Assembly (NCBI GenBank): GCA_029953675.1
Contig: JAMWBK010000007.1
Location: 434,001-498,000 of the forward strand
Origin: Rhodosorus marinus CCMP1338
Taxonomy: Eukaryota > Plantae > Rhodophyta
Length of the DNA: 64,000 nucleotides
Direction: 5' to 3'
Both the position numbers and the translations under genes were made by a program. Within the stretch, counting starts at the first letter, position 1. Each line of letters starts with the position of its first letter. Below are positions 4,559 to 54,648 of this stretch, in pieces. The notes below the pieces were generated by a model. The model did no database searches. It had not been told where the DNA came from and saw only the letters and a program-made list of their open reading frames with translations.

Positions 4559-7500
4559 ATGGAGATGGAGGAAGTCCCGGAGGCGTCTGCTGAGCTGGAC
4601 CCCAAGGTCGAGGTATAGAATGATCAAGTCAGGATGGAGCGGTTTTTCGGCAGGCTTCTAAGATTTTTTTTTTTTTCCAACAGATCGTCGACGTCTATCG
4701 CCCCGAAGCCGATCCTGAGCTTCGCGAGTTTTATGTAGCTATTCCCGACTTTGAAAGCTTGACTGAAGAAAAGCGACGAAGCGAGGTTCACGAGATTGCT
4801 GGATACAAGTGGAGGCTTCTCTTGTTCCCCAAAGGCAATGACACAAAAAACTCTTTGAGTCTCTACCTGGAGTGTGAGGGACCTGTTAATACGGATGAGC
4901 AGTACCCGATTAGAAAATGGTTAGTATCGGAAGCATGATCGGGTATGCGCCGGGGGGGGTGAGTCGCTGCTGACATGTCGTACCCACTCTTCGTTTCTTT
5001 TTAGGAGGTTTCCGGCTTCGTTCAAGCTGATTGTCTGCAGTCAGGGGCCGGAATCTGTTGATATCGTGCAAGAAACCCGGCACATCTTCTCACACAATGA
5101 TACAGACTGGGGATTTCGTGAAATCGTCTCGTTCGACATCCTTTACTCTGAGAACGAATCATACATAGTTAACGGAGCGTTGAAACTCGGTTCGTCAATT
5201 TCCATCGAGAATTCTGAAGAATATGATTCCAGGAAAGAGACCGGCTTCAACGGAATCAAGAACTTGGTAATGCCAGCCTCTCCCTGGTCGTGGACATCAC
5301 AGTACTTTCTTTGTAGAAACGATCGGAGCTTACCGCTCTCAATGCTGGGGAATCAATTCTTATCTCGAATGCTGTTGAATCTTCTGCTAATGCAAATTCA
5401 CAATAGGGAGCGACGTGCTACTTGAACTCTCTGCTGCAAGTTCTTTTCACTCTCGGAGATTTTCGAAAATCGGTTTTCGGAATGGAATTGCCTGCGGACG
5501 ACGACGACGACAAAATTCCGTTTGCATTACAAAAAGTCTTCTACGAACTGCAGAATGGGGCTGCTCCCGTGAAGACTAAGAGGTTAACCAAGAGCTTTGG
5601 CTGGGACAGTTCCGATGCTTTTACTCAACAGGATTTGCATGAGCTGAACCGGCTACTGTGCAGCCATCTGGAGGAGGCGATGAAGAAGCAGAATGCGAAA
5701 AACAAGATCAGCGAGTTGTTTGAGGGCAAGCTTGTCAACTTTATCCAGTGCGTGAACATAGATTATACCAGCACCCGGGACGAAGCTTTTTTTGACCTCA
5801 ACTTGACCGTTCAAGGCAGCAAGACCATCTACGAATCCTTTGACAAGTATCTTGAGGTGGAAATGCTGGATGGGGACAACAAATATAGGGCGGAAGGGTA
5901 CGAAGATCTTCAGGACGCGAAGAGAGGGGTCAAGTTCAGTACGCTCCCTCCAGTCTTGCAACTCCACCTAAAGCGCTTCGAGTTTGATTACGTGCGAGGC
6001 ATCAACGTGAAGATCAACGACCGACTCGAGTTTCCCGGAGAACTAGATTTGCGAAACTACGTCGAGAAAAGCAGTGGCAACGAGGTTTACTCGCTGCACT
6101 CAGTGCTGGTCCACGTCGGCGATGTGCACGCCGGCCACTATTATGTGTATATTCGGCCTTTTGCTGAAACCAATCAATGGTACAAGTTCGACGATGAAAC
6201 AGTCACACTCGTAAACGAGAAGGAGGCTATTGATGAGAATTTCGGGTAACTGCGGGCAACATCTCCATTGTCAGCAACATTCCCTTCTTCTAACTTTCGA
6301 TCGAAACTCCTTCGCTTGCTCTTGCTGAAGGTCTCCGACTCCCCGCAAACTCTCGAATGCGTATATGCTTCAATACGTACAGAAGGACAAGGCAAAGTCA
6401 CTTCTGAAGAAGGTGAGAAGGAGGCTGGCTTCCGTCCAAAAAAAGGGGCTACGTCTGAACAATGTCTTTTCTGGCTCATGTCCGCTGGGATCTCATCTAC
6501 GCCTCTTCAGGTAGAAACGGTGGATGTGCCAAAGGCGTTGGAGGAAAGAATACTGCTGGACGCAGAAGAAGAAGAGAACAGGAGACGAGAACGAGACGAC
6601 TTCCACCTGTTTATGGACGTGGCGATTGTACGAGAGGAGTCACTGCTCTCTCACAACGGAGTCGACCTTATACCCTGGGACTCAGCGGAAAGATTGGACC
6701 GGCGCTTGATACGAAAATCTATGTTGTTCAGGGAGTTGGCTGAGTTAGTGACTGGGCATCTTGGCCTGGACTCGCACCAGACTCTCCGAGTTTGGAGGCT
6801 GTGCCAGAGGCAAAACTCCACAATTAGGCCCGACAGGTGCGTATCGCAGACCTGACATTCGCCCAGTGACTTGGATTAGGTGCCGTCTGTTTCCCATCGT
6901 TGAACGCACGGCTATGTGCGTCTGTGGTTTTCTAGATTGTTGACTTCTGGCGATGACGATGTCCCCCTCTCGAAACTATCTGGCTTGGGTTCCGAGCTGC
7001 AGCTTCTACTTCAGACCGTACCAAAGTCTGAGGTGGAGGCAATGGAGACGGATGAGGTGCTACAATTTTTCAAGGTTTTCGCCCCCAAGCCCATTCCAAT
7101 CCTCGCATGTATCGGAAGCCTGGCGTGCAACAGGTCCGCAACAGTGAAGCACTCCATCCAACAGCTGATGAAGCTCAAGCCAGTGCCGCGGGAGTTGGTG
7201 CTGGCGGTGCAAGCAGGAAATATCACTGTTTTCGAAGAGGTATGTTTGTGCGAAGACGTTGAAGAACTGAAATCGTTTGATGGCTGAAGTTCCTCCTGTC
7301 CCGGCCGCTGTCTAGGATACACCGCAGCCAGTCAAACCAATAGACATTGAGAAGACGCATGATGAACTGGGGCTAGGGACAGGTGATATTATCGTCATTC
7401 AACTTCCACCCAGTGTTTTGCTAGAGTCGTTACCACCTAGTATCCTTGAGAAGCGATCAACGCCATTGCAGGGAATGCATGACGTGAAGACCGCGAGCGA

Positions 7501-12814: not shown

Positions 12815-15800
12815 GTCATAGGCTCGAACCACAACTTCTGGGAGATCGTTACCGGTCACCCATCTGCAGCCTCTGCGCCCTACAGATGGAAGCTTATACT
12901 CGCGACCTACCTCCGTATCTAGATGCCCCTTGATAGCCTCAGTAGTCTACGACTATCCGGAAAAACTCCGTCTCTAGGATCACCAGTCTCCTCAAACCGC
13001 TCATCCCACGCTCGTAACCGATTTACGTGCACCCTAGCGATCTTTGCCGGGTCCTGTTCCCCTTCCAGAAGATAACGGACATTTCCAAGTCTTCGCTGTA
13101 CTCGGTACGGACCTAGCCACGGCGTGCTCAGTTTTCTCCCAACTCCGAGGACGTCCGGCGGGTAGAAGACGTTCACTCGGTCTCCGGGTTTGAACTCTAC
13201 CTCACTGACCGCTTTATCATAACATTTCTTTTCCGTCTCCTTCGCCTTCCAGCTGTGTTTCGTCCGCTCTTCGTGAAGTTCCTTCACGTGCTCCGCCAGA
13301 TCCTCTCGCGTAGGGTCTGATTCCTGTCGAAACCTCAGGTTGTAGTCAACTCCGAAATCAAACGCCTGAACTCCGAACATTGCCCGAAATGGAGAACATT
13401 TCGTCGCCGAATGAACAGCAGAATTATAGCGATAACTTGCCAAAGCAACTTGGTCGTCCCAGAAAAAAAAAAAAGAATCGTAACGCAAACGCTCGGATGT
13501 CCTTACACAGTGTACTGTTGAACTTCTCGACAGCTCCATTGGTCTGCGGATGAAACGCGCTTGTCAGGATCCTTCGAATCCCCATCTTTCTGCAGATGTC
13601 TTGCAGAACGTTGGATAGAAAACTCGTTCCCCGGCCGCTCAGAAACCCCTCTGGAGGACCGAACAATAAGAACCATCGTTCCAAAATGATCTTCGCAATC
13701 ACCTCCTTTGTCTCCTCCTTAATCGGTACCGCTACCACGAATCTTGTCAACAGGTCCATCATAACTGACACCTTTCCATTTCCGGTGGCCGCTTTTGGGG
13801 AAATCTCTACAACATCAGAGCTACGATCTCAAAACGCCTGGTCACCTGGTCCAACTGAAAACGCCCTTGCTTTCTGTCTCTCGCCAGTTTATCAGTTGCA
13901 CAGGTTACACATCCCCGTACGAACCGTGATACGTCACTCGCCATTGTCCCACCAAAAATGCCTTCTGAGTTTACTCAGAGTCCTTGCTACTCCCAGATGT
14001 CCGCATGCAGGGGCTCCGTGAAAATGTCGTAGAATCCCCGATCGTAAATTCTCTGGAGCATAAACCAATGGAACCCCATTCACGATTCTTACGACCAACC
14101 CCTCATTAATAGCATATTTCCCATCCTGATCGTTCACAAATTTCTCCAAGTCACCAAGGTCTTGCATTTGCTCAGTCTTCATCTCCACGTCGTCCGGTAA
14201 ATCCCATCCCGGGTCTCCGTCTACCACAACCGCTACCGACTCACCATGTGTATCGCCACCCTCCAGGTCGTACACCCTCGATAGTGCGTCTGCCGAAGCC
14301 ATGATCGGACTAACACCAGACCGGTGTTCCATCTGAAAATCATACTCTTGAATGTCAAGCATCCATCGCAACAACCTCCCCCTCGGCTCGCGTAGACTCA
14401 TTAGCCACTTCAGTGCTTCGTGATCTGATATGATTTTGAGCTTTTCTCCTAAAACGTACGTCCGGAACTTTCTTAACCCGAAAACTACCGCCAAGCATTC
14501 CTTTTCAGAGACCGTATAACGCTGCTCCGCCGCCTTGAATTTCCTGACGCAAAACGTAAGGGCCTCAGTCGCCCTTCCTCGTCTGCAATAGAACCACACC
14601 AACTCCGACTTCGCTGGCATCTGACGCCAAAATCTTCTCAGCCTTCGCCGAAAATGTCGCCAGGATGCAAGGATTAGACAGCTCTGCGCGCAAATCCAAG
14701 AATGCCTCCCGTTGACGTTGTCTCCATTTCGAATTCCATTCCGGAATCACAACTGTGACAGCCTTCCGTTTTTTCTTATTCCAGTTGGTCCCAACCAGGA
14801 CCTCGTAAAAAAACGAGGCTGAATCCGTCTAGCCAGGTCCGGTAGAAAAGCCTCGAAAAACCTGCAAATACCGATGAACCGGAGAAGTGAGTTGCCATCA
14901 CTCGGTTCTGGATATTTTTAACGGCAGCGAGGTGAACCTCATTGGGTTGTAAACCCTTGGCGGCCACTCTATGCCCCAAAATATCCACACTCCTTCTCCC
15001 GAAGCAACATTTTGATAACTTCAACTTGACGCCTCTTTCCCGAAGTCTTTGAAAACCTCCCTCAGATCCCGCAAGTGTCCCCATGCATCCTCTGATCCGA
15101 CAGTGAGATCATCCATGTAGGCAAACGCCGGTCTACCCTTCAAATCTCCTAAGGTAGCGTTTATGACTCTTTGTAGCGTCGCCGGTGAATTCTTGAGTCC
15201 CTGTGGCATTCGGGTGTACTGGTACAGTCCCGGAGGAGTCCTAATCGCAGTCAACGGACGGGACTCTTCTGCAGAACAATCTGGAAAAACGAGTCACGCA
15301 TGTCCAAAGTAGATAACTCGCTTCTCCTAACCAATCAAGTACCGCTTTCATGTCCGCCAATGGGAAGGTATCCGCTTCAGTTAGGCTATTCAGCTTCCGG
15401 AAATCCGTTGTCAAGCGGTAGCCCCCGCTCGCCTTCGGCACCAAAACGTTATACGTCGCCATGGGGATATACACGGCTCGAGCACTCCCTTCTGGATCCA
15501 TTCCTCTATAAACGCCCGTTCCTGGTCTAGAGCCCTCCTCCGTAGGGGAGCACAATAAAGTTCCACGGTTTCCGGTACCTCGATCCGATGCAATACCCCT
15601 TCTACTTTACCCAAACCCATGAACAAATCCGCGAATTCAAACAGCAGGTCTCGTAACCTTTCTTGATCCTGCTTCACAACCGAAAATTCAGACAAGTCTT
15701 GCTCCTTTATCGACGACTGGATGTCCTCTTCTCCCTCTTCACAGACCGCTACTAGATGGTCACTTCCAACCTCCATCCCCAAAGCTCGAACCTCAAATCG

Positions 15801-16256
15801 ACCGCTTCTATGGGATAGGCTAAGCGTCAGCCATCCTCTCTTCCAATCCAACGTAGCATCTGTTTTCCTAAGAAAATCCAACCCCAGCAGAATCCCTGCT
15901 GGCACCTTCCGCATGACTATCACATTCACCTTGAACTTGTTTCGGCAATTCTTACGGCAATTCTTCCTTCACCAGCAGCCTCCACTGGTCTCCCATCTAC
16001 CCCTTCAGCCTGAACATCTGTATGCGCCAACTGACACCCAGACTTAATGGAAAATGGAGAAATCTATCCAGTTGGAAGATGCTCCGGTGTCCACAACAGC
16101 GGTCAAGGACCCATAGCCTTCCACCTCCACTGCGACCTTCAAGCATGAGACCCGTTGCTCTCGGTCTCCGGAATCCGACACCCAACCCACCGACCCTACC
16201 TCTCCGGCGCCGAGCCCAGGTTTTGTCATTCCGCCAATTACTTGTTTTGTGGACAC
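12815..16256 (-). pseudogene. Gypsy pol (protease, RT, RNase H, integrase), multiply frameshifted
   Basis: AVVDTGAS (protease), ILLGLDFL, YRLTTDFRKLN, RMPQGLKNSPATLQR and YMDD (RT), SDASEVGVG and YTVSEKECLAVVFGLRKFRTY (RNase H), GHLGVARTLSKLRRHFWW, AFHPQTNGAVEKFNSTL, WLGPYRV (integrase), spread over at least 8 ORFs in changing frames. Confidence 0.92.
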
Positions 16257-16588
16257 TCTCGTGTCATATGTCCAATTTTATGACATGTAAAACATCTCCG
16301 TTGCTTGAGATCGGTCGTCCGAACATCCTTCCCAGACGCCTGATTGCGCACATCCCCTTCAACCACCCAGTGAACCCTTTCTATCGGCCTCCGAAACAGT
16401 TTCGCAAGTATTATCGCTTTCGATACATGTTCAGAAAATGTTCCCGTCCAACCAGCCGAGTGTGGATGGAAATCTCTCGGCAGGCCTTGGATGAATCGGT
16501 AAGTCAAAGCCTCCTCCGACACAGACTCAGGCAACGTGTCAGAGAGCTGCCTAAGCCGCTCCGCGAACAGTTCAACTGTCTCCCTAGC
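16238..16588 (-). pseudogene. Truncated gypsy gag with CCHC zinc knuckle
   Basis: RETVELFAERLRQLSDTL...YRFIQGLP (gag-like) and CFTCHKIGHMTREC (Cx2Cx4Hx4C). The N-terminal gag part is replaced by unrelated AT-rich DNA. Confidence 0.85.
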
Positions 16589-17922
16589 TAAAACATAACA
16601 TAAATTTATATGTATATATATGAACCATGTCCCAATCCTCAACCTGTCCCATCCCCTAAGTATGTCCCATAAATCCAATAGACAGACTGTCCATTTTTAA
16701 TTTTCTGGTTGGACGGGAACATTTTCTGAACATGTATCGAAAGCGATAATACTTGCGAAACAGTTTCGCAAGTATTATCGCTTTCGATACATGTTCAGAA
16801 AATGTTCCCGTCCAACCAGCCGAGTGTGGATGGAAATCTCTCGGCAGGCCTTGGATGAATCGGTAAGTCAAAGCCTCCTCCGACACAGACTCAGGCAACG
16901 TGTCAGAGAGCTGCCTAAGCCGCTCCGCGAACTTAAAAATGGACAGTCTGTCTATTGGATTTATGGGACATACTTAGGGGATGGGACAGGTTGAGGATTG
17001 GGACATGGTTCATATATATACATATAAATTTATGTTATGTTTTAGCTAGGGAGACAGTTGAACTGTTCGCGGAGCGGCTTAGGCAGCTCTCTGACACGTT
17101 GCCTGAGTCTGTGTCGGAGGAGGCTTTGACTTACCGATTCATCCAAGGCCTGCCGAGAGATTTCCATCCACACTCGGCTGGTTGGACGGGAACATTTTCT
17201 GAACATGTATCGAAAGCGATAATACTTGCGAAACAGTTTCGCAATTAGCGGAGCGAGGCAACCGCATCGTGCTGGAAGTCGTGAGAACGGTGCTGGCCTC
17301 ACCGGAGCTACCCGCCGCACTCTGGGCGGAACTTGCTAATGCGGCGGTTTCTTACGTAATCGCGTGGCAAGAAGAGTTTGCCTGAGTCTGTGTCGGAGGA
17401 GGCTTTGACTTACCGATTCATCCAAGGCCTGCCGAGAGATTTCCATCCACACTCGGCTGGTTGGACGGGAACATTTTCTGAACATGTATCGAAAGCGATA
17501 ATACTTGCGAAACAGTTTCGCGAAACAGTTTCGCGGCGGGTAGCTCCGGTGAGGCCAGCACCGTTCTCACGACTTCCAGCACGATGCGGTTGCCTCGCTC
17601 CGCTAATTGCGAAACAGTTTCGCAAGTATTATCGCTTTCGATACATGTTCAGAAAATGTTCCCGTCCAACCAGCCGAGTGTGGATGGAAATCTCTCGGCA
17701 GGCCTTGGATGAATCGGTAAGTCAAAGCCTCCTCCGACACAGACTCAGGCAACGTGTCAGAGAGCTGCCTAAGCCGCTCCGCGAACAGTTCAACTGTCTC
17801 CCTAGCTAAAACATAACATAAATTTATATGTATATATATGAACCATGTCCCAATCCTCAACCTGTCCCATCCCCTAAGTATGTCCCATAAATCCAATAGA
17901 CAGACTGTCCATTTTTAATTTT
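16392..17922. repeat. Mosaic of direct and inverted duplications of a gag fragment and its flank
   Basis: 16392-16704 = 17610-17922 (313-bp direct repeat). 16933-17318 and 17533-17918 form a 386-bp inverted repeat. 16705-16760 and 16764-16819 form a palindrome with 56-bp arms. Identity judged by eye. Confidence 0.92.
17245..17377 (+). mobile_element. Ty1/copia-type integrase fragment (partial inverted copy at 17533-17606)
   Basis: Translates LAERGNRIVLEVVRTVLASPELPAALWAELANAAV, then after a 1-nt shift LRNRVARR. This matches the copia integrase consensus AERxNRTLxExxRxML...LWAEA..TAxYLxNR. Confidence 0.8.
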
Positions 17923-18489
17923 ACAGTCTGTCATTCCTCTAAAAGACGGACAGTCTGTCTTTATTTTCACGGCGCCGTCGGAGATTAGGTTTGAATTTTA
18001 TTTAATTTTGTGAAGTTTTTAAGATGTTCCTTTTTGGCGTTGATGAGAGCATTGATTCTGTTGTTGTGATTTGAGGTGGTGGGGAAGGTGGTGAACGTTT
18101 TGGTCTGCGAGGGAGGAAGGTGTTTGTTTTGGATTGTTTTGAAGGGAGGTATTGTTTGTAAAGGAAGAGTTTGGGTTTCTGTGCAGAAGTTGGAGAGCTT
18201 GACGGTAAGGCGCATCCATCTTCTCTTCTTTTTTTCTGCCACTTTTTTTGCCACTTCCCGCGGTTTTGGTTGCTTTTTTTTTGGAGGGGGGTTTGGTAGG
18301 GTTGGAGGACGTGTTGGGGTTGGGTTGGGCCTATGAAACTTTGGATTGGAGTTGGAGTTGTTGATCTCGGTGTTTGAGAGCGGATTTACTAGATATTTTT
18401 TGGCTTTTGGTGATGCTTTTTGTACCTTCTGCTGAATCTATCGTGTTTTGTGGTTTTGGGGGGGCTTTTGCTTTCGCTTGGGTGTAGAG

Positions 18490-18745
18490 ATGGCGAAGAG
18501 TAAGAATCATACGGCGCATAATCAGTCCTACAAAGCGCATAGGAACGGAATTAAGAAGCCGCTGAGGCACCGACATCCGTCAAGAAAATGCGTAAGTAAC
18601 TCTAGCATGTTTTGAAGAGGACTGCCGATTCGTTTGTTATCGGCATGCTGAACTTGGCCCTGCTATGATTCTATGCTTGATGCAGATGGACGCGAAGTTT
18701 CTTCGAAATCAGAAGTTTGCAGTTAAGGGCAACAAGAGGAGCTGA
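18490..18745 (+). CDS. RPL29: 60S ribosomal protein L29 (eL29), 53 aa; exons 18490-18591 and 18686-18745
   Basis: [34 protein letters not shown]|[19 protein letters not shown], with a phase-0 GTAAGT...TGCAG intron. Not in the ORF track. Confidence 0.97.
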
Positions 18746-31802: not shown

Positions 31803-34800
31803 TCAACTAGCCGAGTTGTTCGTTGGTGTCAGTTGACTGCACGTTCGATCTGTTTCTCGATCACTGGAGACCTCAGCTGATACCTCAGATGGGCCATGCT
31901 TGACTGCCTCCTGCTTAGAATCGCCGGATGAATCGATAGGAACTTCCCTCGGCATCAACGTTTCGTCTTCGGAATAGACTGCGGGCGTTGGAGGTTGGCC
32001 ATCAACTATTGTCTCAGTCATTGCCTGACCGATGGATTTCTCATTCATTTGCATTCCTAACATATCTGCTTGTGCTTGCTCGTCGGGGGACACGACGGAT
32101 TCATGCTGAGATCTTTCCACTCGAGTTCCTTCAGGAGGGGAAGAACCTTCAGCTTCCTTCTCAATGGAGCTCCCATCCTTCTCTTTTGGAATCTCTGGTT
32201 CTCGCTCCAACGATGGCTGGTCCGTTTCGTGGTCAACTGACCTCCCGCCCGTATCCTTTTCGTTGGACGTTTCCGGTTCTCTCTCCAACGATGGCTCTTC
32301 CGTTTCGTTGTCAACTAACTTCTCCTTCGACGTTTCCGGTTCTCCCTCCAACGACGGCTCTCCCGTTTCGTTGTCAACTGACCTTCTGTCCGTATTCGTC
32401 TCGTTTGACATCTCCGGTTGTCTCTCCGACGATGGCTCTTCCGTTTCCTTCTCAGGAACATATGTCTCCCGTTCCATAACAAACGAAGGTTCTTCCGCCT
32501 CCTCCTCAGCGGGAAGCGGTTCAGCTTCCTTCACTTCAGACGGCTCTGATACTGACTTCTCTACGACGGACTCCCCAACTTCTTCGCTAAAAGGCAAACT
32601 CGCTGTAGGTTTCTTGGATACAGATTTCTCGTGTTCCCTGTCGCGCATAATTTCCTCCGGTTCTTTCAAATCACCAAAAACTTCCGCTATCGCTTTCTCA
32701 AAGTCAGACTCGGTCGGCTCACTCCCTGCAGGCTCAGATGATTCCCTCTGAGCCGAGTTTTCAGCAGATGGCTCGTCTGGATCAATGTCAAACGACATCT
32801 CAGCTGGATCAATTTCCATAAGCACATCAGGTGGTTCGATATCGACAGGAGCACGAGCTCTTGTTCGCGGTCGACTTCCTCCAGTCACGGAACTTGGCAA
32901 TACACGGCTAGCAGCAGGAGTAGAGGGTGTTTCCGTGCTCTCACCGCAGGTCCCCAAATTTCCAACCCTGCTCTGTGAAGCCTCTTCACCGGAGTTAAGT
33001 GGAATCGTTGCGGTTTCAACACTCCCTTCCCTCCCCATAGACTGCAGCAGCTGAAGCCGCATTCTGTCCCGATTCAGTCTATTGAAGGTAGCCGACAAGT
33101 GGGGACTTATCCGAGGTGTCACCGGGACTTCATCGTCATCGTTATCCGTGAGGTCGATTGTTACCACGGATTTTCTGCGCTTTACAGACCTCGGGGTCCA
33201 GGCTGGCGTGGTGAATGACCTAGCCCCCACTGATGAGAGCGGCTGGTCACTTTCGAGATCAATCTCCTGCGCAACTTGACCATTGTCAACGCTGGTTTGC
33301 GGTGTTGGCAGGCTCAGCTTTCCATCTGGGTGCAGTTCAACTTCGTCAGCATGGGGAAATTCTTTCAGGGCCTCTTCGTTGAGCGGGCATATATACAGTT
33401 GCTGAATGCTTGCAGTCTTCTGGTTACACACTGGGCACTGCGATCGAAACAAGCAAGGCGCACTCAAAATTAGCGGATGCCCACAATCTTGCCGGTGGCT
33501 TAAACGCTGGCTTTCGGGGACAAACCTCGTCGCTCTTCCTAGTTGTTTCCATTGTTAAATATGTTTCCAGATTGAAGCACTGCACGTGATTGCATTCTCT
33601 CCCTTTCACCGGAATATCAATTCTGCCTTGCGACAAAGGGCATTTCATGGAAAAGCTAATAGAACTGCGAAGTACGAAGGGCAGGACATGAACACGAAGT
33701 AGTTGGCTAATGAGTGACGGGCACACTCTTTCCGCGAGAAAGTACGTGCCACTGGCTCTGCGTTTTAAATAGCATACTCCACTTTGATGTCGTCAGGACC
33801 AGCTGAAAACTTGGTCAGTTCTTTCCGACGGGCCTTTTCCAGGGGCAAAATTCGTGTTGTTTGCTGCCTAGCAGCAGTGACCCGATCCTGACCACGTTCC
33901 TCCTGAAGTTCGTCAAGACGGACCACTCCCTTTTCATCGGGAGGTTTATAGGCCTCAAAATACTCAACAGTGGACGTTCTCACCATCCGAACTAAATCTT
34001 CCCTATCCTTCACGGTCACCTACATAACAAAAGGTTCCAAGGAAGCGAATGAGGCTGAGGAGTACTCTAATGGAGGGACGGTGAGGGAGTTTCTTTGTTA
34101 CCGTTTGTGCCAACACGCAGTGAAGAGCATTCTGTCTTAGACGCGAGTAGTCAATACCCTTTATCTCGACGGTGTTCATCGCATGCGAACTCCCGCGTTT
34201 CTTCTTCAGAAAGGGGGTTAAATCCAGGAAATATTCTGCTTGAAACGAGAGACACCTATCCGCCTGTTTTTCGGTATGAAGAAAGAGAGCATCAGTGGTT
34301 TGCTCGCAGAAGACGGGGTCTGCCTTGTCGGCATACGTGCAACTGATCCTTTGGGAGGAAAACTGTTAAACTGTTTACGTCGAATGACCAGTTCTTCGGG
34401 CAGAAACTAGTCGTCCTAATCCCTCCTCTGTAGTTTTCGACCCTTAGGAACCTGATTAACGCAACAATTTCGGTTTGAGTTGTTGAAAACAGTTTTTTTC
34501 AACGGCGCATTTCGTGCTATGCTGGACTTTGCCGGCGGTGAACCGCACCTCAAGTGGACACGCAGGTTTTTCGGGCGTCTAAACTGCAGTGTCTCGGGCG
34601 TTGCGAAATGGATCCTCAAAGCACCTACTCGAAGCAAAAAAGACTCCTTTTCAACATGACGGCGAGACTAAGCGGCCTAGTTGACACGCGTCCGACTTTT
34701 CAGCAAATACCTTTCCGCCATTCGTTAAAAGTTTGGCACAAGAATCGGGGCTTCCCGAGCGGTGCATCGAAAGCTTGAAATCTAGGATCAAGACTTTTCA

Positions 34801-40327: not shown

Positions 40328-41779
40328 TCAGCGAACTGGAGTGCACGCCTTCAAAAGTCCGCTAACCTCTTCAAAATCTATAGAGTCCAAGCGCGCGTCG
40401 AAAAGCCTTCCAGGTTGCCGCATGGCAATATCTGGCGATATGCCCATCCCATTAATCTCGTTTCCCTTTGGTGTTAAATACTTGGCAACAGTGAGCACGA
40501 CCGCAGACCCATCAGAAAGACCGAATACCCCTAAGGAGCGAGTAACATCAGTGAGAGCTCAGATCTTGTCCCCGCTCACAGACCCTTGTTAACATAGACG
40601 AATGGACCCCAAAGCGTACCTTGGATAACGCCCTTGCCGTAGGTAGTTTGGCCCACCGACACGGCTCTACAATTCTCTCTCAGCGCTGAGAGAAGCACCT
40701 CGCTCGCGCTTGCACTATACTTGTCAGTTATCACTACCATCGGCTCGCGTATGAGGTCATGTTTGCCTACTTCCTTGGCGAAAAGAGTGCTCTGATGCCC
40801 AGTCTTGTCTGTTACCTTTATGGCCGGGACGTTGCTGTCCATGAAAAGACCCGCGACATCAAGGGCCCCCTCGACAACCCCGCCCAAGTTTGATCTGAGA
40901 TCCAGAGCATAGTAATCGGGCTTCTCCTTCTCAAGTTCCTGAATCGCATCTCTAACGCCGAGGTTGCTGGCTGCATTGAATTCCTTCATACGTATGTACC
41001 CAACGCGCTTTCCGTTCACTTCCTGGTTGCGAGGAGGATGCACGCGTTCAGTCGATTCTGGCAGACTTCGGTCAGGAAAGCAAACGCCTGGAACGTACCT
41101 TCATTTTGTACTTTACAGGATTCTCGACCGTACTTTTCCTCACAAGCGTCACCTCACGGGCAGGTTGATCCGCGGTCTTCAAAAGTAAGGTAACCGAGGA
41201 TCCTTCTTCCCCTTGCAACATCTCCAGAGCACTCGCGGGGGTCAAGTGGCTGCTTGGGATTCCGGCAATTGCTTCTACAACATCCCCGCGACGCACAGAC
41301 TCCTGCGCAGCGGAAGTGTCTGGACGCGGAGTGGATGCAACAATGAACCGTCCTAGCTGATCTGATGAAAGCAGCAGGCCCAAGCCAGTGATGTCGTACT
41401 TGGCGAGCTTATTGAAGTCTTCCGGTGTCAAAAAGCGCGCATACTTGTCCTCCAGAGACTTCATCATGCGTCGAATTGTAGCGTACGCCTCATCCCTCTC
41501 CTTAGGCTGATCCTTTGTAGATTGAAGAAGCACAGCATCGAGGTCAATACCAGCGATGTTGAGAGAATTCCTCTTTACAAGCTCCGCAGCTTCCCTCACT
41601 ATATCGTTGTTGATATCAGCCGAGACAACGCCTGCGGGGCCGCCGGCAGCAAGCGCGAATCCAAGCATGGCTCCAGCAGCACCAGCCCGGACACACCTTC
41701 CCCAGTTCAATCTGCATACCACCGCCGTCCTACCAGCCCGGCCAGACCCTCCAACTCCTACACCAGCAATAAACCCCAT
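40328..41779 (-). CDS. ctpA: C-terminal processing peptidase (S41, CtpA family), multi-exon
   Basis: MMKSLEDKYARFLTP, PDZ (ITGLGLLL...RRGDVVEAIAG), VGYIRMKEFN, LDLRSNLGG, SASASEVL, TYGKGVIQ, DGSAVVLTVAKYLTPKGNEINGMGISPD. Confidence 0.92.
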
Positions 41780-43841
41780 CGCTTCAAAGCTTTCTATCCC
41801 AAACCTCCCATTTGTAAAAACAGACAACAAGAAAACTTGCTAAAGCTGAATCCCACAAACTGAACACAGACCCTACTCCAGTCGATCCTTCAAGATCGGG
41901 TCCCCCCCTCTTTAAGAAGGCAAAAAAAAAAAATTAGCTCCCACTCCCAAGCCCTGGAATCCAGTCCCCCAAAATTCTCACTTCACGCTGACTCCTAACT
42001 CACCCAGATCAATCTCCAGCAAACTTCGTCATCAAAAACCTTTGGCTCGGTTGCACACTATCCTATATAGAAAAAAGAGCTTTCCAGCCTTCCACACGTC
42101 GTCCTCACGAAAGGTCCACCATCATTCTCCACCACGGTCATCAGTGATTGTTTCCAATCTCCAAGCCCTCCCACGAGCCGCCCCCCTTTTTCATCATCCC
42201 GTACCCCTTACCTTTTTCCAACATTTATGAATAAAACTTAAAAAACCATATATCCTCTATGTTATTTCACTATTCATATATTTAAAATCAAATTATATAT
42301 TGACGCGTGGCGTTGATTTATTTATATTAATATTCATTACATATTATCCAATTATTTAATATCCACGTGTCTATAAGAGGATTTTTCACGATATAAATTG
42401 GGTAAGAATAGTATTGGTTTTATTTTATGAATTAGATGTATTTTTAAACGAATTAAGTTCTAACGCGTGGCCTTATGTCCGAATTTTTATCACTATATCT
42501 TCTATTTAATTCAATTGTCTATATCCACGCGTCCTAAAAGTTAGTCTCGAATTTGGATTGGATAAACGTGTTTATTTGTGAAAAATAAGGTTCGCGCTTT
42601 TTTTGGATGGTCGTTGGCTTACTGAGAGAGCGCGAGTTAGGACTGTTCGGGGTCCTGTGGGAGCTGACTTTGGAGAGGTGCTGAACAGAATGTACTGCCT
42701 TTTGCATAAGTTTATCATGTTTTTAAGAATCTATGGTCTTGTATTTCTCTTGAATGTGAAGGCGCTGCTCGTCGGTTTGAGCATTTCCGCTGAGATGACC
42801 AAAAGCATAGGATGTAGATGAGTTACAGACAAGGACATTAATGGATGCATATCAGTTGCACGGAAGAAAACTACTGTGGTCCGTAAAATCTAGGATGCAA
42901 GTTAGTTATAGACAGGATTGTTGCTGTTATCATGATAAAGACGTGACGCAGATGTTGGACAGCCAGTGGATAGCTTCTAGGCGAAGGAACGGTCAATCTC
43001 AAGTCGCTTCTAGCGCAGCACAATTCTGCTCTCGTGGACCGTGACGATCGAGTATCGGATCACTTATAAATACTAGCGGATTACTTACACATGGAGTTTT
43101 TGACTTCTGTCAAAGCGCAACCAACGGATGAATGACAAGCTTGAGCCAGACTCGTGTCTGTGAGAGATGATTTAGCTCCGCTGGAACTGTTCCGAGTTCA
43201 TCTAAAATTTCTTGCAGTAATTTCGAGGCTTATGATTCTGAAGTATTTCGAGAGTTTCCCTGACCCACCCCCGAAGTCGCCTCAGTACACTACCACATCA
43301 GCCCGTCTTCGCCGATTCAGCTTTAATGTCAAAACTGTTTTTACGGAACGCTCTCTACTGATCACCAGGACAAGAACTTACAGCAGACCATCCAAAAATT
43401 CCAGAACGGAAAAGCCGTTGATAACCGAATCCACTTCGTCCTAATGAAAGTAGACCCGTTCCTACCATTCGCTCTATTGGCATGGTGGAAATGGTCCGGA
43501 AACTGGCCGCTCGTTGGCCGGTCAAGGTTTTGGTCCCCAAACGACGTCTCCAATTCCAAGCGAACAGACTGCTAGTGCCTTGCCAGACGAAACGTTGGAA
43601 CGAATCAGCCAGAGCTTGTAACTGAATCTACAGGACTTCAGAAGCCCTGTTGAAAACCTCAAAAGCTGTAGAACAGAATCGACATCTAAAGCAAAAACCC
43701 GATGTTCATCCTCGTGAGTAGCAACCGACACGCTCCGACAGTACCGCGAAGGTGGGCAGGATGTTTGAAGCTGTTTGCTGGAGTGTTGGGGAAGTATGCT
43801 GGAGAGCTTTCCAGAGTCTTTATAGGGCAGAAGATTAAATT

Positions 43842-48195: not shown

Positions 48196-48354
48196 AGCCG
48201 TTGCTGGAGTGAGCGGCCAACTGAACAAATGAAAGCCAAATTTCACGCTTAAAAATATTGGGGCAAAGACGTCTGAAGGCTCCTGTTACAGGCAACGTCC
48301 TCCGCCAACTTCTTCTTTCCGAAATTTCTGAATAAAATTTCTGGGCCAAAAGTA

Positions 48355-48585
48355 GATGGCCGTTGATACCAGGTGTCTCCGGTCAGACATACAAAGCCAT
48401 CGGGTATCCTGGTCCTGGAGATCCAAGGTGGAGCCATTTTACGTTGAAACCATCGGGCCGAGTAAAGACACTATGAAGATGGCGGTTGATACCTGATGTC
48501 TCTCGTCGGACATACAACGCCAACATTCTCCTGGGACAGGAGATCGAAAGTAAGACTATATTACATTAAAACCATCGGGCCGAGT
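48355..48585. repeat. Degenerate tandem duplication with about 123-bp period; more diverged copies to about 48925
   Basis: GATGG(C/G)CGTTGATACC...AAACCATCGGGCCGAGT at 48355-48463 and 48478-48585. Confidence 0.8.
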
Positions 48586-50361
48586 TGAATGGCAATGTCA
48601 TTGCCTTAAAAAAAGGGGCCAGATATTTGGCCTTTTGTACAGGACGCAGGGCCTGCGAGCATGGCCACTGCTGCAATGACGTCTTCCAGCGATTTCTAAT
48701 AAAACTACCAGGCTAAAGTTCAGGCCGTTGCTACCCCAACATCGCCCGTCAGACCCGCAACGCCATTGCCGTCTCAGCTTCGAGGTCGACACGGTCGAAA
48801 TACAATTGGCAAAAGAAACCATCGCGGCGGGGTTGATCGCCCATGTTCCATTTGCTTCCTCGCCAAAGTAGAATTCTGAGTCCGTTGTAGTATCGTACCG
48901 GGCCAGAGACTTGGCCGCTGATACTTACGACAAAGGCTTCGTGGTAGAGCGGTTGAAACGCCACGGATGGCACATGTCAAAGCACTACATTGACATCTTC
49001 AGGTGTCTTGGACTCTTCAAGATACACCTCGAGGGCAACTATGGAGCCAGTATCGACGTCCTTGATCGCTTGCAGAGACTTCCGCGCAGGATCGATCTCC
49101 TGCAGTTTGGAGTTGAGATTGTTCTTTTTTGGTCAGCAATGAAGCTATGATCTGACACCTGCCTTGTAGAGAATGTTTTAACCGTACGCGAGTTTCTGTC
49201 CCCGCTGCTGCAGCCCAAGATTGTCCGAGTGGGACACCCGAGGTGAACATGACCATGTCCCACGTTACCGTATCCAGTGGAGGAGTACTTCGTCTCAAGT
49301 TCATGAGCCGCGCCAGCGCTCCTCGGAGGTGCACTTCGAGGTCCTTCACTTGTGTTTCATTGAGCTTGCGAGTGGGAGATCTTATGCCTCTGAGGAGGAA
49401 GACGTAATTCCGCATCACCGAGCCCCTAGAGCGCTCGAGTATCGGGATTACGAACTTTTCGACTTTTCCCTTCGGTTGAAACAAGAATAATTCCCAACGT
49501 ATTAAAAACCGGCTCTGGGTTAGATCGGAAATCTATGCTACGGTTTCCGCCTCACCTCTTCGAACCATTTCCTTGCCTCAGTAAGGTGGTCCCGTACGTA
49601 GGAGCATACATCCGGATGTCGACACACCGAGACAGCAATTCCAAACTTCCTGTTCCTTTCAAACAAATCTGAGCGTGCGCTCATTAACTCAGAACTCTAG
49701 CAACACGAACTTGCGATTCCGCTACCATGGATGGAATCCTGATTCGGAAGTTGTTCGCGGCCATTTACCTGCTGGATAGACACCTTCAATGAACAGCACC
49801 ACCTGCACAGCAACGAAGAGAAATTCCAGCACGAGATCTATAGGCTTCCATGATCCTTCCATGTGGTTTATGGATGCTCATCAGCTGCAAGGTTCTGTTT
49901 TCATTTTTCCCTCAAAACGTGATCAGCGGGCGTCCCCGCAAGATAAAAGCTTGTTCACAAAATTTTCCGCTTGCGAAAGAGCAATCCATGAACTTCTTCC
50001 GCCCCACTAGTCTAGCGAAACTGCAAGGTGGTCTGAATGATCTTGGAGGAGTCGAAGCGTATACCAGTGCAGCGGCTTATAGCTCAGCTTCAACCTATGC
50101 GCTTCGGGTGAGTTGTTGATTAATCCAGTTCTGACTTGTTACGTTGTGAAACAGCAACCAGATGCCTGAGCGTGTCAGGAAGGGATGTGCAGGAGATGAC
50201 TACATTCACCATCACCTTTACAAGCTAATGAAATGGGCAATGGGTCCGCATCGATTTCCAAAAGGGAGTACGACATCCAACCCGCTATAAGACATGATGG
50301 ACAAAAACACATGGCCTATCGACACTGTTGATTTAAATTCATGTGCCTATTAGGGATTCTT

Positions 50362-51919
50362 TTAGAACGGATTGGTACCACCACCCGCCGCACCACCGCC
50401 ACCAAGTCCAATATCGAGGTTTCCAAACCCTGCTAATATGTCATCGTCGTTTCCTGCAGGGACACCACCCATGGGTGGGCTGGCTCCAAGACCAACAGGG
50501 GCCGCTTGAGGCTGTGGAGGAGCAAGACCGGCCCCAGCTCCACCGAGCCCACCGCCAAGTCCGGCTCCCGCACCTCCGAGGCCACCGAGTCCCCCAAGTC
50601 CACCATCAAGACCTCCTCCAAGTCCTCCAAATCCACCAAGTCCACCGAGTCCACCAAGACCTACAGCTCCACCTGCCAATCCAGGTCCTCCCATGCCCAT
50701 GCCTGTTCGTAGAAAAACGGAGCCAAAAACAAGACTACGGGGTTAAAGACAAAACAGTTGAAACCTATTGCCGCAAATTTAAAATGTGCTTACCAGCTGC
50801 GGGGTTTGGAGGAGGTGCTGGCAAAGCAAGCGGAGCAGGGGGAAGAGCTGCCATTCCAGCGTTACCCATTGGATTCATTCCCACCCCTGCCATTGGGTTC
50901 ATCATGGGATTCATCCCCATTCCACCGTTCATCATCGGGTTCATTCCAGGATTCATTCCGGCCATTCCCGCGTTCATTGCAGGATTCATCCCAGCCATTC
51001 CCGGGTTCATACCGGCCATTGCTGGGTTCATCATTGCGGGATTCTGCATTCCTGGAGCCATGCCGGGCATACCACCCATTCCAGGATTCATCCCAGCCAT
51101 CCCAGGATTCATTCCCGCCATGGCCGGGTTCATTCCTCCCATAGCGGGATTCATTCCCATTCCCATGCCTAATTTTAAGGAAAAGCGGACCATTAGCAAC
51201 AGCACGCCAGATAAACCCAAGCCTCAGAGCTAGCACCTACCTGCTGCAGCTGGGTTCATGCCTCCCATCATTGGATTCTGCATAGCAGGATTCATAGCCG
51301 GATTCATCCCCATGCCCATGGCAGCCATGTTGGGGTTGATTCCCATTGCGGCTAGTGTAGCTGCGGTGATGTCTGCCGTTGGAATAAGTGAAAAGGTAAA
51401 GTACGCTCAGCTATCAGACATTGCGAACGACAACTTTTGCTCATCGCGAGTAATCTCACCTGCTTGACTAGCCTTTTTCTTAGACTTCGACTTCTTCTTC
51501 TTCTTCTTCTCGGAGGAGCTATCGGAATCTTCATCGGAGTCACCTTCGTCCGAGTCATATTCTGAATCATCATCAGAATCTCTTCTCTTCTTCTTCTTCG
51601 ACTTCTTCTTCCTAGTTCTTCTATCATCATTGTCCCTTCGATCATGATACCTGTCATCGTACCTTCCTCCGTAACGATCACGACCGCCATCGCGTCCATA
51701 CCGATCCGGAGGTCCATACCGATCCCCACCATACCGATCCGGAGCACCGTACCTCCCACCACCTCGGTCACCACCTCGGTCACCACCTCGGTCACCACCA
51801 CCACGGTAATCATCCCGTCGATAGTCACGAGACACACCCACACCACCACGGTCATAGTAATCGTCCCGTGGAGGTGGTTCGCGATACCCTCCACGGGTTT
51901 CATAATCGTACCTACTCAT
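50362..51919 (-). CDS. Low-complexity protein (RD/RG-rich, K/S/D-rich, GMNP repeats, C-terminal NPF), about 4 exons
   Basis: ATG at 51919 (MSRYDYE). In-frame GT-AG joins link ORFs 51407-51919, a short middle exon, 50765-51220 and 50362-50700, ending DDDILAGFGNLDI...TNPF*. Confidence 0.8.
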
Positions 51920-54041
51920 CTTCCTTAGTTCAAATCTACAAACCCATCAACCTCTGCAACCTCCAATTCCTTCTGCCACCAAACTCCCTCAAAGCCCAAG
52001 CTTCCGTCTTCACTTCCCAAACCCCTCTGTCCTCCCTCAATAAGTCCTAAAGCAATCTTTTTCCAGTGAAAGACCAACTTTCACCCTTTGGCCCCAAAAG
52101 AAAGAAGAAGAAGAAAAACACACGACCAAAAGGGGTTGGAAAAACAAAACAAAAAAAGGGCATACCGCTGCTGACCTAGTTTTTAACCCCCCTCTACAGA
52201 AATCAAATTGTAGAAAAGCTACGAAACTACACCTGCTAAGTGAGAATGCAACTGCTAAACAGTAATGACTTTTGGAACCAACCTCTGAAGTTAACAGAAT
52301 CGGAGAATATGAAATCTGCAACTATCAGCACAGGGGGGGGTAGAGATTCATAATTGTCCTATTCGTCTGTAGAATTTCTCCGTGGTAAATCAGTTGATTC
52401 GGACAAGCTGTCTAAAACAAGACCTTAAGAGGGGGAAAAAAACCCAACGTTCATGCCCGCGCCGATATGATGGGGTTCCGATACCTTCCCTTCCGAAAAA
52501 CTGATCAAGTAGATTTTCCTGAATTATGATGTTATCCAGGGTATACATGTTTTTCTAAGGGGTTGCCTGTCAGATACTCAGAGTCACTAAAAACAATGCT
52601 CGGAATGTACGGGGGGGGGGAAATAAATGACACCCATGGTTCCCCAGAAAGGAAATCTGCCTGGGGTGTAGGGGGGATGGAATCGGCCGGGAGGCCTTTC
52701 ACTGAATTCCTGGTTCCGCGTGTTGTTCAGGGAAATTAATAATGATTGAATCAATCTATATTTTGGATTTTCAGACTTTTCAGAATACAATTGTCTCCAT
52801 CGTTCCGCAAGAACCTGTGTTCCATTCATATTTCCTCAGGGGGGTTAGGAACGCTGAATAGGGATGAAAATTATCGATTAACGAAAATTGTCGAGTATAT
52901 TTGCACGGCAAAAAGCCTTCACAATGCCCTAAGCATAGTTAGCAACTAGAAGATGGACAATCGGTTAGGACGATTTTTTCTCTAGAACATGAGATTATTG
53001 GAACATGGTTACTTTAAAAAAGGATGTCCTTTTTGTATTTTTGAATTATATTCTAGGTGAAGGGTACAAATATAGAACAAAATAAAGCATTTGCAGGTGG
53101 ATCGGAAACGGAGTTTCTGGAATGAAATTGGGAAGGTTTAGGGTTTTTACATGAGTTGTGTCTTGGCTTGGGTTGGCTCTGTCGCAACGTCGTCTTTGCT
53201 CTTCACAATGAGCCCATGTGATTCTTTCGTTTCTCGGTTTGCGGAGGGTCTTCGGATGACGTACGTTCCGCTTATCTGGCTCTGAGAGGCTGTCCAGTCG
53301 TGTTCGCAATTGACCTTGATAAGATCATATATCTTAACATGGTGGATGTGTAACGTTCTCTCCAACGTCAAGATGCGATTCTGCTCATTCCAAGTGCTAG
53401 TTTGCCCGTGGGGTTTCGAGTGTTGGACTGGTTCAGTCAGATCCTGCTTTCGAAATCTGTGCCTGTTTCTATAAGAGAATGCAGGTCTCTGACTACAACA
53501 GCCCGCACAACACACAACAGACCCATCAGCTTGAATTCTGAGTTCTCGAAAAGTCGAAGTCAGCAAAAGCTTTGCCCTCCGGCAATGAGCTAGTGTTTAC
53601 TAGTACACTCGCAGCACACTAAGATCCTACTGAAAATTCACACAGCTTCTGGTGACGACTTTGACAATCGATTTCGACCGTATGGAACAATCGATTCCAT
53701 GCAATGGGAAGATGGTCTGTCCTGGGGGGCTAACGAACCTTAAACACCGCAATGTACCTTTGTTCGCCGCTTTACCAAAACGCGTAAGAAACGTCTTTGG
53801 GCTACGTTAGGGACTACACCAAGCATGGCTGGTCTCAAACTAGTCTCGCGGTCAGATGACCGTCGCGAATCATCCGCACAGATTGCTAGCGCTGCTCACA
53901 CCTGCCCGGCTAGATTTGCGTAGCATAGCCAATGCTGTGAAGCTAATTTTCCAGACCAAACGAACACACAGCCAACGCTAAGGACCTAATTTTCCTGGCC
54001 AAGTCAACATAGACATTGTTCTTCCGGGCCGCAGATGAACC

Positions 54042-54323
54042 GTGGCCAATGTTACAACCTAGATTTCCCAGCCGGATGAGCATGACCACTGCTACAACCC
54101 TAGATTTCCCGGGCAGGTGAGCGTGGCCAATGTTACAACCCTAGGTTTCCCGGATACTTGAGCATGGCCAATGTTACAACCCTAGGTTTCCTGGCCAGAT
54201 GAGCAGGCCAATGGTACAACCTACATTTCCTGGCCAGATGAGCATGGTGTGGTTACAACCTTACACTTCCTGGCCAGATGAGCAGGCCAATGTTACAATC
54301 CTAGCATCCCTGGCCAGATGAAA
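54042..54323. repeat. 39-41 bp minisatellite, 7 clear units plus degenerate flanking units (about 53927-54370)
   Basis: Consensus ATGGCCAATGTTACAACCCTAGGTTTCCTGGCCAGATGAGC. Units start at 54042, 54082, 54123, 54164, 54205, 54244, 54284. Confidence 0.92.
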
Positions 54324-54648
54324 AGTTCCAACGTTACCCGCCCAATTTTTCTGGCCAAAAACAAAATGGTCATCAGTGCCTCTTTGGGTGAAAGATCTTA
54401 GTGTCCCATTGACCGGCTTCAGGCGGGTTTGCAGGAACGCGAGAAGCGGGGAGGACCTAAGCAATCATGGACAAGATTCACCTCGTCTAAAAGGGTTTAA
54501 TCTTACAATAGTATGGAACTCCACTAAGGCTCGTTGTCAGGACAATAATCCTTTGAAAACTGCTGGGAACTCGGGTTGCAAGCCGACGGCGTTGGTTTTT
54601 GGTGGGGAGGTGGGGTGCCAGTTTAGCTGTAGCGGCCGGGAATTCGTG

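Follow-up and report, generated by a model that had tools for sequence, protein, structure and literature searches.

We analysed a 64,000-nucleotide (64-kb) stretch of DNA, hereafter the window, from the nuclear genome assembly of the red alga Rhodosorus marinus CCMP1338 (GCA_029953675.1, contig JAMWBK010000007.1, positions 434,001 to 498,000 of the forward strand; PMC10250338). In this window, a decayed Ty3/gypsy-type retroelement on the minus strand borders a cluster of forward and inverted copies of its own truncated gag and the adjoining flank (16392–17922), beyond which lie an intergenic region and a gene for ribosomal protein L29e. The cluster, which probably records a complex DNA-level rearrangement, is the subject of this report.

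The gypsy-type element and its truncated gag

The pol of the element (12919–16256, minus strand) is broken into separate open reading frames (ORFs), which individually match the Pfam families RVT_1, RT_RNaseH, Integrase_H2C2, rve and Integrase_p58_C. Together with a protease motif read in the ORF at 16044–16256, these pieces cover protease, reverse transcriptase, RNase H and the zinc, core and C-terminal domains of the integrase, and the order gag, protease, reverse transcriptase, RNase H, integrase is preserved along the minus strand. Consecutive ORF pieces are separated by six frame changes, counting that from gag to pol, which could be programmed, and by two same-frame interruptions. In the protein collection searched, the ORF carrying RNase H and integrase forms a 90% cluster by itself, no other protein reaching at least 90% identity; since this copy of the element stands alone, short reads should have mapped to its body without ambiguity during polishing, which makes the breaks in pol probably real. 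No long terminal repeats flanking the element were found in the window, the only match between its two ends being a 19-bp, AT-rich stretch of low complexity.

Upstream of pol lies a gag (16238–16588, minus strand) with weak Pfam matches to Retrotrans_gag and zf-CCHC, of which the C-terminal part of the Retrotrans_gag domain and the zinc knuckle survive. Its closest relative is encoded by a JGI transcript contig (protein P0001, contig L001; 72% amino acid and 77% nucleotide identity), whose protein cluster also includes an MMETSP transcript (P0003). The alignment with this relative runs collinearly from 16583 to 16110, and the gag ORF of the relative reaches 137 nt upstream of the point where homology begins, showing that gag in the window is 5'-truncated. 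A protein search with gag returned two relatives, both transcripts, at 72–85% identity, and the relatives of pol are named Rhodosorus marinus by UniRef; for the element as a whole, the nearest relatives are MMETSP and JGI transcripts at 69–72% amino acid identity. To judge by these transcripts, a diverged member of this gypsy-type family is expressed.

Exact anatomy of the rearranged cluster

We parsed 16392–17922 greedily, admitting exact matches only, with two sequences as sources: a unit U (16392–16704, 313 bp) and a piece X (17244–17379, 136 bp). Unit U combines 197 bp of gag, antisense on the plus strand, with 116 bp of flank (16589–16704) that is not gag and has no homology to the related gag. 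The parse resolved the cluster into 12 segments, each an exact forward or inverted copy of U or X, and the extra DNA (1,218 bp, or 1.2 kb) is fully templated, with no substitutions and no untemplated bases.

Read along the plus strand, the first copy of U (U1–313, 16392–16704), which joins the rest of gag natively on its left, is followed without a shared base at 16704/16705 by an inverted piece (U64–8, 16705–16761), and this turns at the centre of a short hairpin, sharing 6 nt (turn-around 1), into forward U7–177 (16762–16932). After 16932/16933, again without a shared base, comes a long inverted copy (U309–8, 16933–17234), which turns at the hairpin centre (turn-around 2) into a forward patch of 10 nt (U7–16, 17235–17244). 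Piece X then follows in forward orientation (17244–17379; parse segment 17245–17379), sharing about 1 nt at its entry and 2 nt at its exit, and leads to inverted U141–8 (17380–17513; U144–8 if shared bases are counted). Behind turn-around 3 lie two forward patches, U7–14 (17514–17521) and U2–14 (17522–17534), which are the source of a tandem duplication of the 13-bp hairpin sequence. These are succeeded by inverted X73–1 (17535–17607), entered with 2 nt (GC) shared, and by an inverted 8-nt patch (U15–8, 17608–17615) that leads through turn-around 4 into the last copy, forward U7–313 (17616–17922), which continues natively into the flank at 17923.

In outline, the arrangement is an inverted triplication, U (16392–16704), inverted U (16933–17234) and U (17616–17922), with templated filler at both of its turning points (16705–16932 and 17235–17615). 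Three copies carry the joint between gag and flank, and the junction from U to X is present twice, as mirror images, the second time in an inverted partial copy comprising the first 73–77 bp of X (17533–17607). This mirrored junction gives rise to a 386-bp inverted repeat (16933–17318 and 17533–17918) and implies that newly made sequence itself served as a template. The sole mismatch between the two 386-bp arms is the centre base of the hairpin, in keeping with a last switch, at the hairpin arm, that returned to the native U.

Piece X derives from a Ty1/copia-type integrase gene, of which it covers the end of the catalytic core, and on the evidence of sequence similarity it was copied from elsewhere in the genome. 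A phmmer search against 1.84 billion representative proteins gave 54 matches at E <= 1e-3 (best E 2.3e-10, 89% identical), copia-type polyproteins or fragments with rve, RVT_2, gag_pre-integrs, Retrotran_gag_2 and SH3_retrovirus domains. Compared as nucleotides, X and the JGI transcript contig L003 are about 94% identical over the full length of X, with a single frame change. No other full copy of X exists in the window, where the piece is unique. Searched alone with a word-index protein search, Pfam and the PDB, X yielded nothing useful, the only PDB match being an unrelated dioxygenase at E 0.098. The word-index search (query 17245–17379) returned no candidate, yet a protein 89% identical to X (P0004) and sharing long exact words with it is present in the larger library, and negatives from such searches with a short query are accordingly not trustworthy.

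The hairpin at the turn-arounds is the 13-bp palindrome CGAAACAGTTTCG (CGAAAC-A-GTTTCG), present in six copies (at 16392, 16756, 17229, 17508, 17521 and 17610) against 0.12 expected by chance. Four of the 11 junctions are turn-arounds lying exactly at its centre, each sharing the 6-nt arm; all four have the same polarity and extend the same side of the palindrome, and none extends the side toward the rest of gag. The other seven junctions lie away from the hairpin and share 0, 0, about 1, 2, 1, 2 and 1 nt. In all six palindromes, whatever the orientation of the copy, the centre base is A on the plus strand. As a plain inversion would give T, this base, which never flips, rules out plain inversions and indicates that the inverted pieces end at the hairpin and are followed by forward-sense sequence.

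At 16705–16819, the cluster contains a perfect palindrome, one central base flanked by arms of 57 nt, whose predicted folding energy as single-stranded DNA is −69.8 kcal/mol (z −24.9). The native hairpin, folded as single-stranded DNA, reaches only −2.7 kcal/mol (z −0.7) on one strand and −3.4 kcal/mol (z −1.1) on the other, within the range of shuffled sequences, and 20 further palindromes of this class, each with arms of 6 nt around a 1-nt centre, lie in the window without being rearranged. We therefore rejected the idea that the native hairpin is a special structure; it seems to be a commonplace microhomology, put to use by chance, and its extension to 57-nt arms would, we infer, have favoured its re-use. 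The palindrome is absent from the related gag of P0001/L001, although the alignment passes straight across its site, and no palindromic structure was found in the related transcript contigs L001, L003 and L004. A search for other gag copies broken at this hairpin brought up only the two transcript relatives returned by the protein search, the closer of them being collinear.

All pieces and palindromes listed in a preliminary description of this DNA were recovered. The six gag pieces are present in the positions and orientations it gave, the palindrome does mark several junctions, and the tandem 13-bp duplication (17507–17534) is there. The repeat had been described as a gag fragment of up to 190 bp, but the unit measures 313 bp, given the flank that it includes; the palindrome at 16705–16819 is perfect as claimed, with arms one nucleotide longer than the 56 bp reported. 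Piece X, its inverted partial copy and the membership of the flank in the unit had been overlooked.

Proposed origin of the rearrangement

We propose that the cluster is a real, chromosomal, DNA-level complex rearrangement produced by iterative fold-back and template-switching synthesis combined with end joining, a reading that we hold with moderate confidence. According to this proposal, a break or stalled fork at the border of the 5'-truncated, decayed gypsy-type element and its flank would have been followed by repeated cycles in which a 3' end was briefly extended, came free and annealed again. On four occasions, the growing strand would have copied U backwards as far as the palindrome and then switched strands through the microhomology of the 6-nt arm, which would have lengthened the arms of the 6+1+6 palindrome to as much as 57 nt and beyond. 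On one excursion, a copia-type integrase gene at another place in the genome would have supplied 136 bp, and part of the newly inserted X would later have been copied back in reverse. The joints with 0–2 shared nt look like end joining or minimal-homology priming, and the last switch would have returned to the native U, from which synthesis may have continued into the flank. The sequence itself shows the anatomy, the exact templating, the positions of the junctions with their shared bases, the identity of X and the precedence of truncation over amplification, and the way the genome was assembled is documented; the break, the enzymes and the number of events, one or a few, are inferences.

The order of two steps can be read directly from the cluster: since the joint between gag and flank was itself copied, the amplification came after the 5' truncation of gag. 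The preliminary description had argued that identical copies beside a pol full of frameshifts make the rearrangement much younger than the element. The frameshifts are indeed there, and the amplification is younger than the element, given the earlier truncation and the decayed pol; that it is very recent on account of the identity of its copies is a weaker claim, as Pilon, supplied with reads that fit six copies equally well, could have erased differences. The proposal of that description, fold-back at one hairpin, accounts for the four turn-arounds but does not extend to the seven junctions elsewhere or to the copia fragment.

The proposed origin agrees well with templated insertions described at yeast double-strand breaks, in which inverted pairs from the same locus join at 2–11 bp (median 6), outer joints share 0–4 bp, pieces measure about 50–150 bp, and templated inserts from distant sites also occur (PMC11724301). 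Correspondingly, the inverted copies here join at the 6-nt arm in all four turn-arounds, the seven other junctions share 0–2 nt, pieces range from tens to a few hundred base pairs, one of them from a distant template, and the insert is wholly templated, U and X together explaining every base (X by its family). The differences are of scale and host: 11 junctions and six copies here compared with one or two pieces there, longer largest pieces (302–313 bp), and a red alga in place of yeast.

The cluster also shares features with products of fork stalling and template switching (FoSTeS) and microhomology-mediated break-induced replication (MMBIR), namely serial switches at low or no homology, gain of copy number and templated insertions, and with the quasi-palindrome correction of the Ripley model, in that the imperfect native palindrome with its 6-nt arms is perfect and longer in each new copy. 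These are models defined by their outcome, for which sequence cannot reveal the polymerase or the structure of the fork, and two of the joints here have no shared base. Accordingly, we file the structure as a FoSTeS/MMBIR-type fold-back and template-switch complex rearrangement with end-joined filler, which fits an established type of error-prone DNA repair or replication accident and is no new class of mechanism.

Several observations weigh against this assignment. All 11 junctions rest on one assembly, and the perfect identity of the copies may come in part from Pilon polishing with multi-mapping 100-bp reads. The pieces of up to 313 bp and the concentration of 11 junctions at one site exceed typical yeast events, and the two junctions without a shared base do not fit pure microhomology priming. 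Moreover, the chance-level stability of the native hairpin leaves the choice of site without explanation, and the donor copy of X has not been located in this genome, its closest match (94% at the nucleotide level) being a JGI transcript contig of unverified origin.

[quoted passage not shown] Inverted triplications that turn at short inverted repeats, and whose palindromic junctions are later remodelled, have been described, with such secondary remodelling seen in yeast amplicons (PMC4689423). Our cluster resembles them in being an interstitial inverted triplication with the middle of its three copies inverted, in turning on one side at a short inverted repeat that was already present, interrupted by a spacer that the turn retains, and in having remodelled palindromic junctions; the confinement of its complexity to the two turning points and the mirrored junction from U to X, which requires at least two ordered steps, would also suit a stepwise origin. 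However, of the two turning points, the hairpin side alone uses a native inverted repeat. The turns at U's far end (16704/16705 and 16932/16933) were made with neither a pre-existing inverted repeat nor a shared base, unlike TID and ODIRA junctions, and they bypass a nearby repeat, GACAGACTGT/ACAGTCTGTC. In addition, a unit of 313 bp, rather than kilobases, is unlikely to include the replication origin that ODIRA requires, the filler comes partly from another locus, and the copies show no divergence that would mark separate dates, although such differences could have been masked by polishing. As the far-side turn lacks the TID/ODIRA feature that the hairpin side has, we placed the structure in the broader fold-back and template-switch kind.

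It is also conceivable, but in our judgement unlikely, that the cluster is absent from the chromosome and arose in sequencing or assembly, through chimeric or fold-back Nanopore reads, through correction or consensus in NextDenovo, or through local reassembly by Pilon. A 13-bp palindrome should be too short to fold back a k-mer graph, which counts against such an artefact. The genome was assembled with NextDenovo 2.5.0 from Oxford Nanopore GridION reads after 6-kb size selection and polished in three rounds of Pilon with Illumina 100-bp paired reads (PMC10250338). Reads obtained at this size selection are long enough to bridge the 1.5-kb cluster, but the assembly is built from Nanopore reads only, the short polishing reads are unable to resolve a 1.5-kb cluster of identical repeats, and a polisher would itself yield perfect identity among copies. 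Nor did an independent data set containing the locus turn up: exact look-ups of a junction-spanning ORF of 143 amino acids and of the native gag ORF returned no record, and a scan of the JGI contig collection with a 29-nt core of U gave no match. Fold-back reads are known in Nanopore genomic DNA, where about 0.55–0.6% of reads were reported to be of this type, but those described have arms of kilobase scale, nearly symmetric about the midpoint of the read, and are seldom seen again at one site (PMC12870357). The locus, by contrast, has arms of 8–386 bp, 11 junctions and a piece templated from another locus, it sits within a contig of 2.2 Mb (2.21 Mb), and no other inverted duplication, or any long repeat or inverted repeat above 95% identity, was found in the 64-kb window. 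The methods text of the assembly, furthermore, mentions no amplification step (PMC10250338).

We give little credence to a product of reverse transcription, whereby reverse transcriptase would have used the hairpin as its own primer and switched between gypsy and copia RNAs packaged together, the scrambled cDNA then being captured in the chromosome. Reverse transcriptases change templates with ease and are able to prime themselves on hairpins, chromosome breaks can take up retroelement cDNA, and both identifiable sources here, gypsy gag and copia integrase, are retroelement genes. Not all of the copied sequence can be traced to retroelement RNA, however: each long copy contains the 116 bp that have no counterpart in the related gag and that continue unbroken into the host DNA lying upstream of the L29e gene, and the presence of a pre-formed joint between gag and flank in three copies indicates that copying acted on a chromosomal arrangement. 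The pol of the element is, moreover, broken. Finally, a chimera of whole-genome amplification, named as an alternative in the preliminary description, is unlikely given that the methods text (PMC10250338) reports no amplification.

Possible RNA product and neighbouring features

Folding of the RNA of 16930–17921, from either strand, predicted a stem of about 386 bp that is almost perfect (−877 kcal/mol, z −82). Transcription from either side would thus give double-stranded RNA of that length spanning gypsy gag and copia integrase sequence, which, if formed, could feed small-RNA silencing of both retrotransposon families. Mu killer of maize is a partial inverted duplication of a transposon that yields hairpin RNA (PMC3440606), and the cluster resembles it in being an inverted duplication of a transposon gene fragment beside a host gene, with 386-nt arms and one mismatch capable of forming long double-stranded RNA; the likeness is structural only. 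By this analogy, the cluster might be a retained, functional hairpin-RNA locus, a red-algal counterpart of Mu killer born of a fold-back repair accident, a suggestion to which we attach very low probability.

If reads confirm the cluster, it would be a natural record of serial template switching that can be read with unusual clarity, with 12 exact segments, four turns at one 13-bp palindrome and a piece of a distant retroelement that was copied and then re-copied in reverse. We know of no work on such repair in the Stylonematophyceae, and confirmation by reads would mean that the signature of fold-back and end joining known from yeast and human tumours operates in red algae too. It would also mean that a trivial palindrome can become a long repeat, potentially unstable or RNA-hairpin-forming, beside a housekeeping gene.

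The last copy of U passes seamlessly into the native flank, an intergenic region read from the sequence (17923–18489) upstream of the L29e gene. This gene (18490–18745, plus strand) has two exons, the first matching Pfam Ribosomal_L29e at E 3.9e-16 and the second, with the stop codon, being identified by reading the sequence. The gene lies next to the rearrangement, outside it, its start codon about 570 bp from the cluster. A short palindromic motif, GACAG-N-CTGTC, occurs in several copies in the native flank (16683–16694, 17897–17908, 17923–17932 and 17949–17960); these include a 10-bp inverted pair spanning the end of U, at which the rearrangement made no turn. The motif may be a binding site or the relic of a small element.

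Elsewhere in the window, a long ORF (50343–51233, plus strand) has a highly repetitive, hydrophobic translation rich in G, F, I and P, and may be a low-complexity repeat rather than a gene. Diverged tandem direct repeats with 78–88% identity occur at 54031–54337, 48354–48585 and 32194–32454, the last falling within an acidic, repeat-rich ORF of 554 amino acids. Two host gene fragments, one with a ubiquitin C-terminal hydrolase domain (5422–6249, plus strand) and the other encoding a PDZ-containing protein that resembles a C-terminal processing protease (41072–41830, minus strand), are both consistent with an intron-bearing photosynthetic eukaryote.

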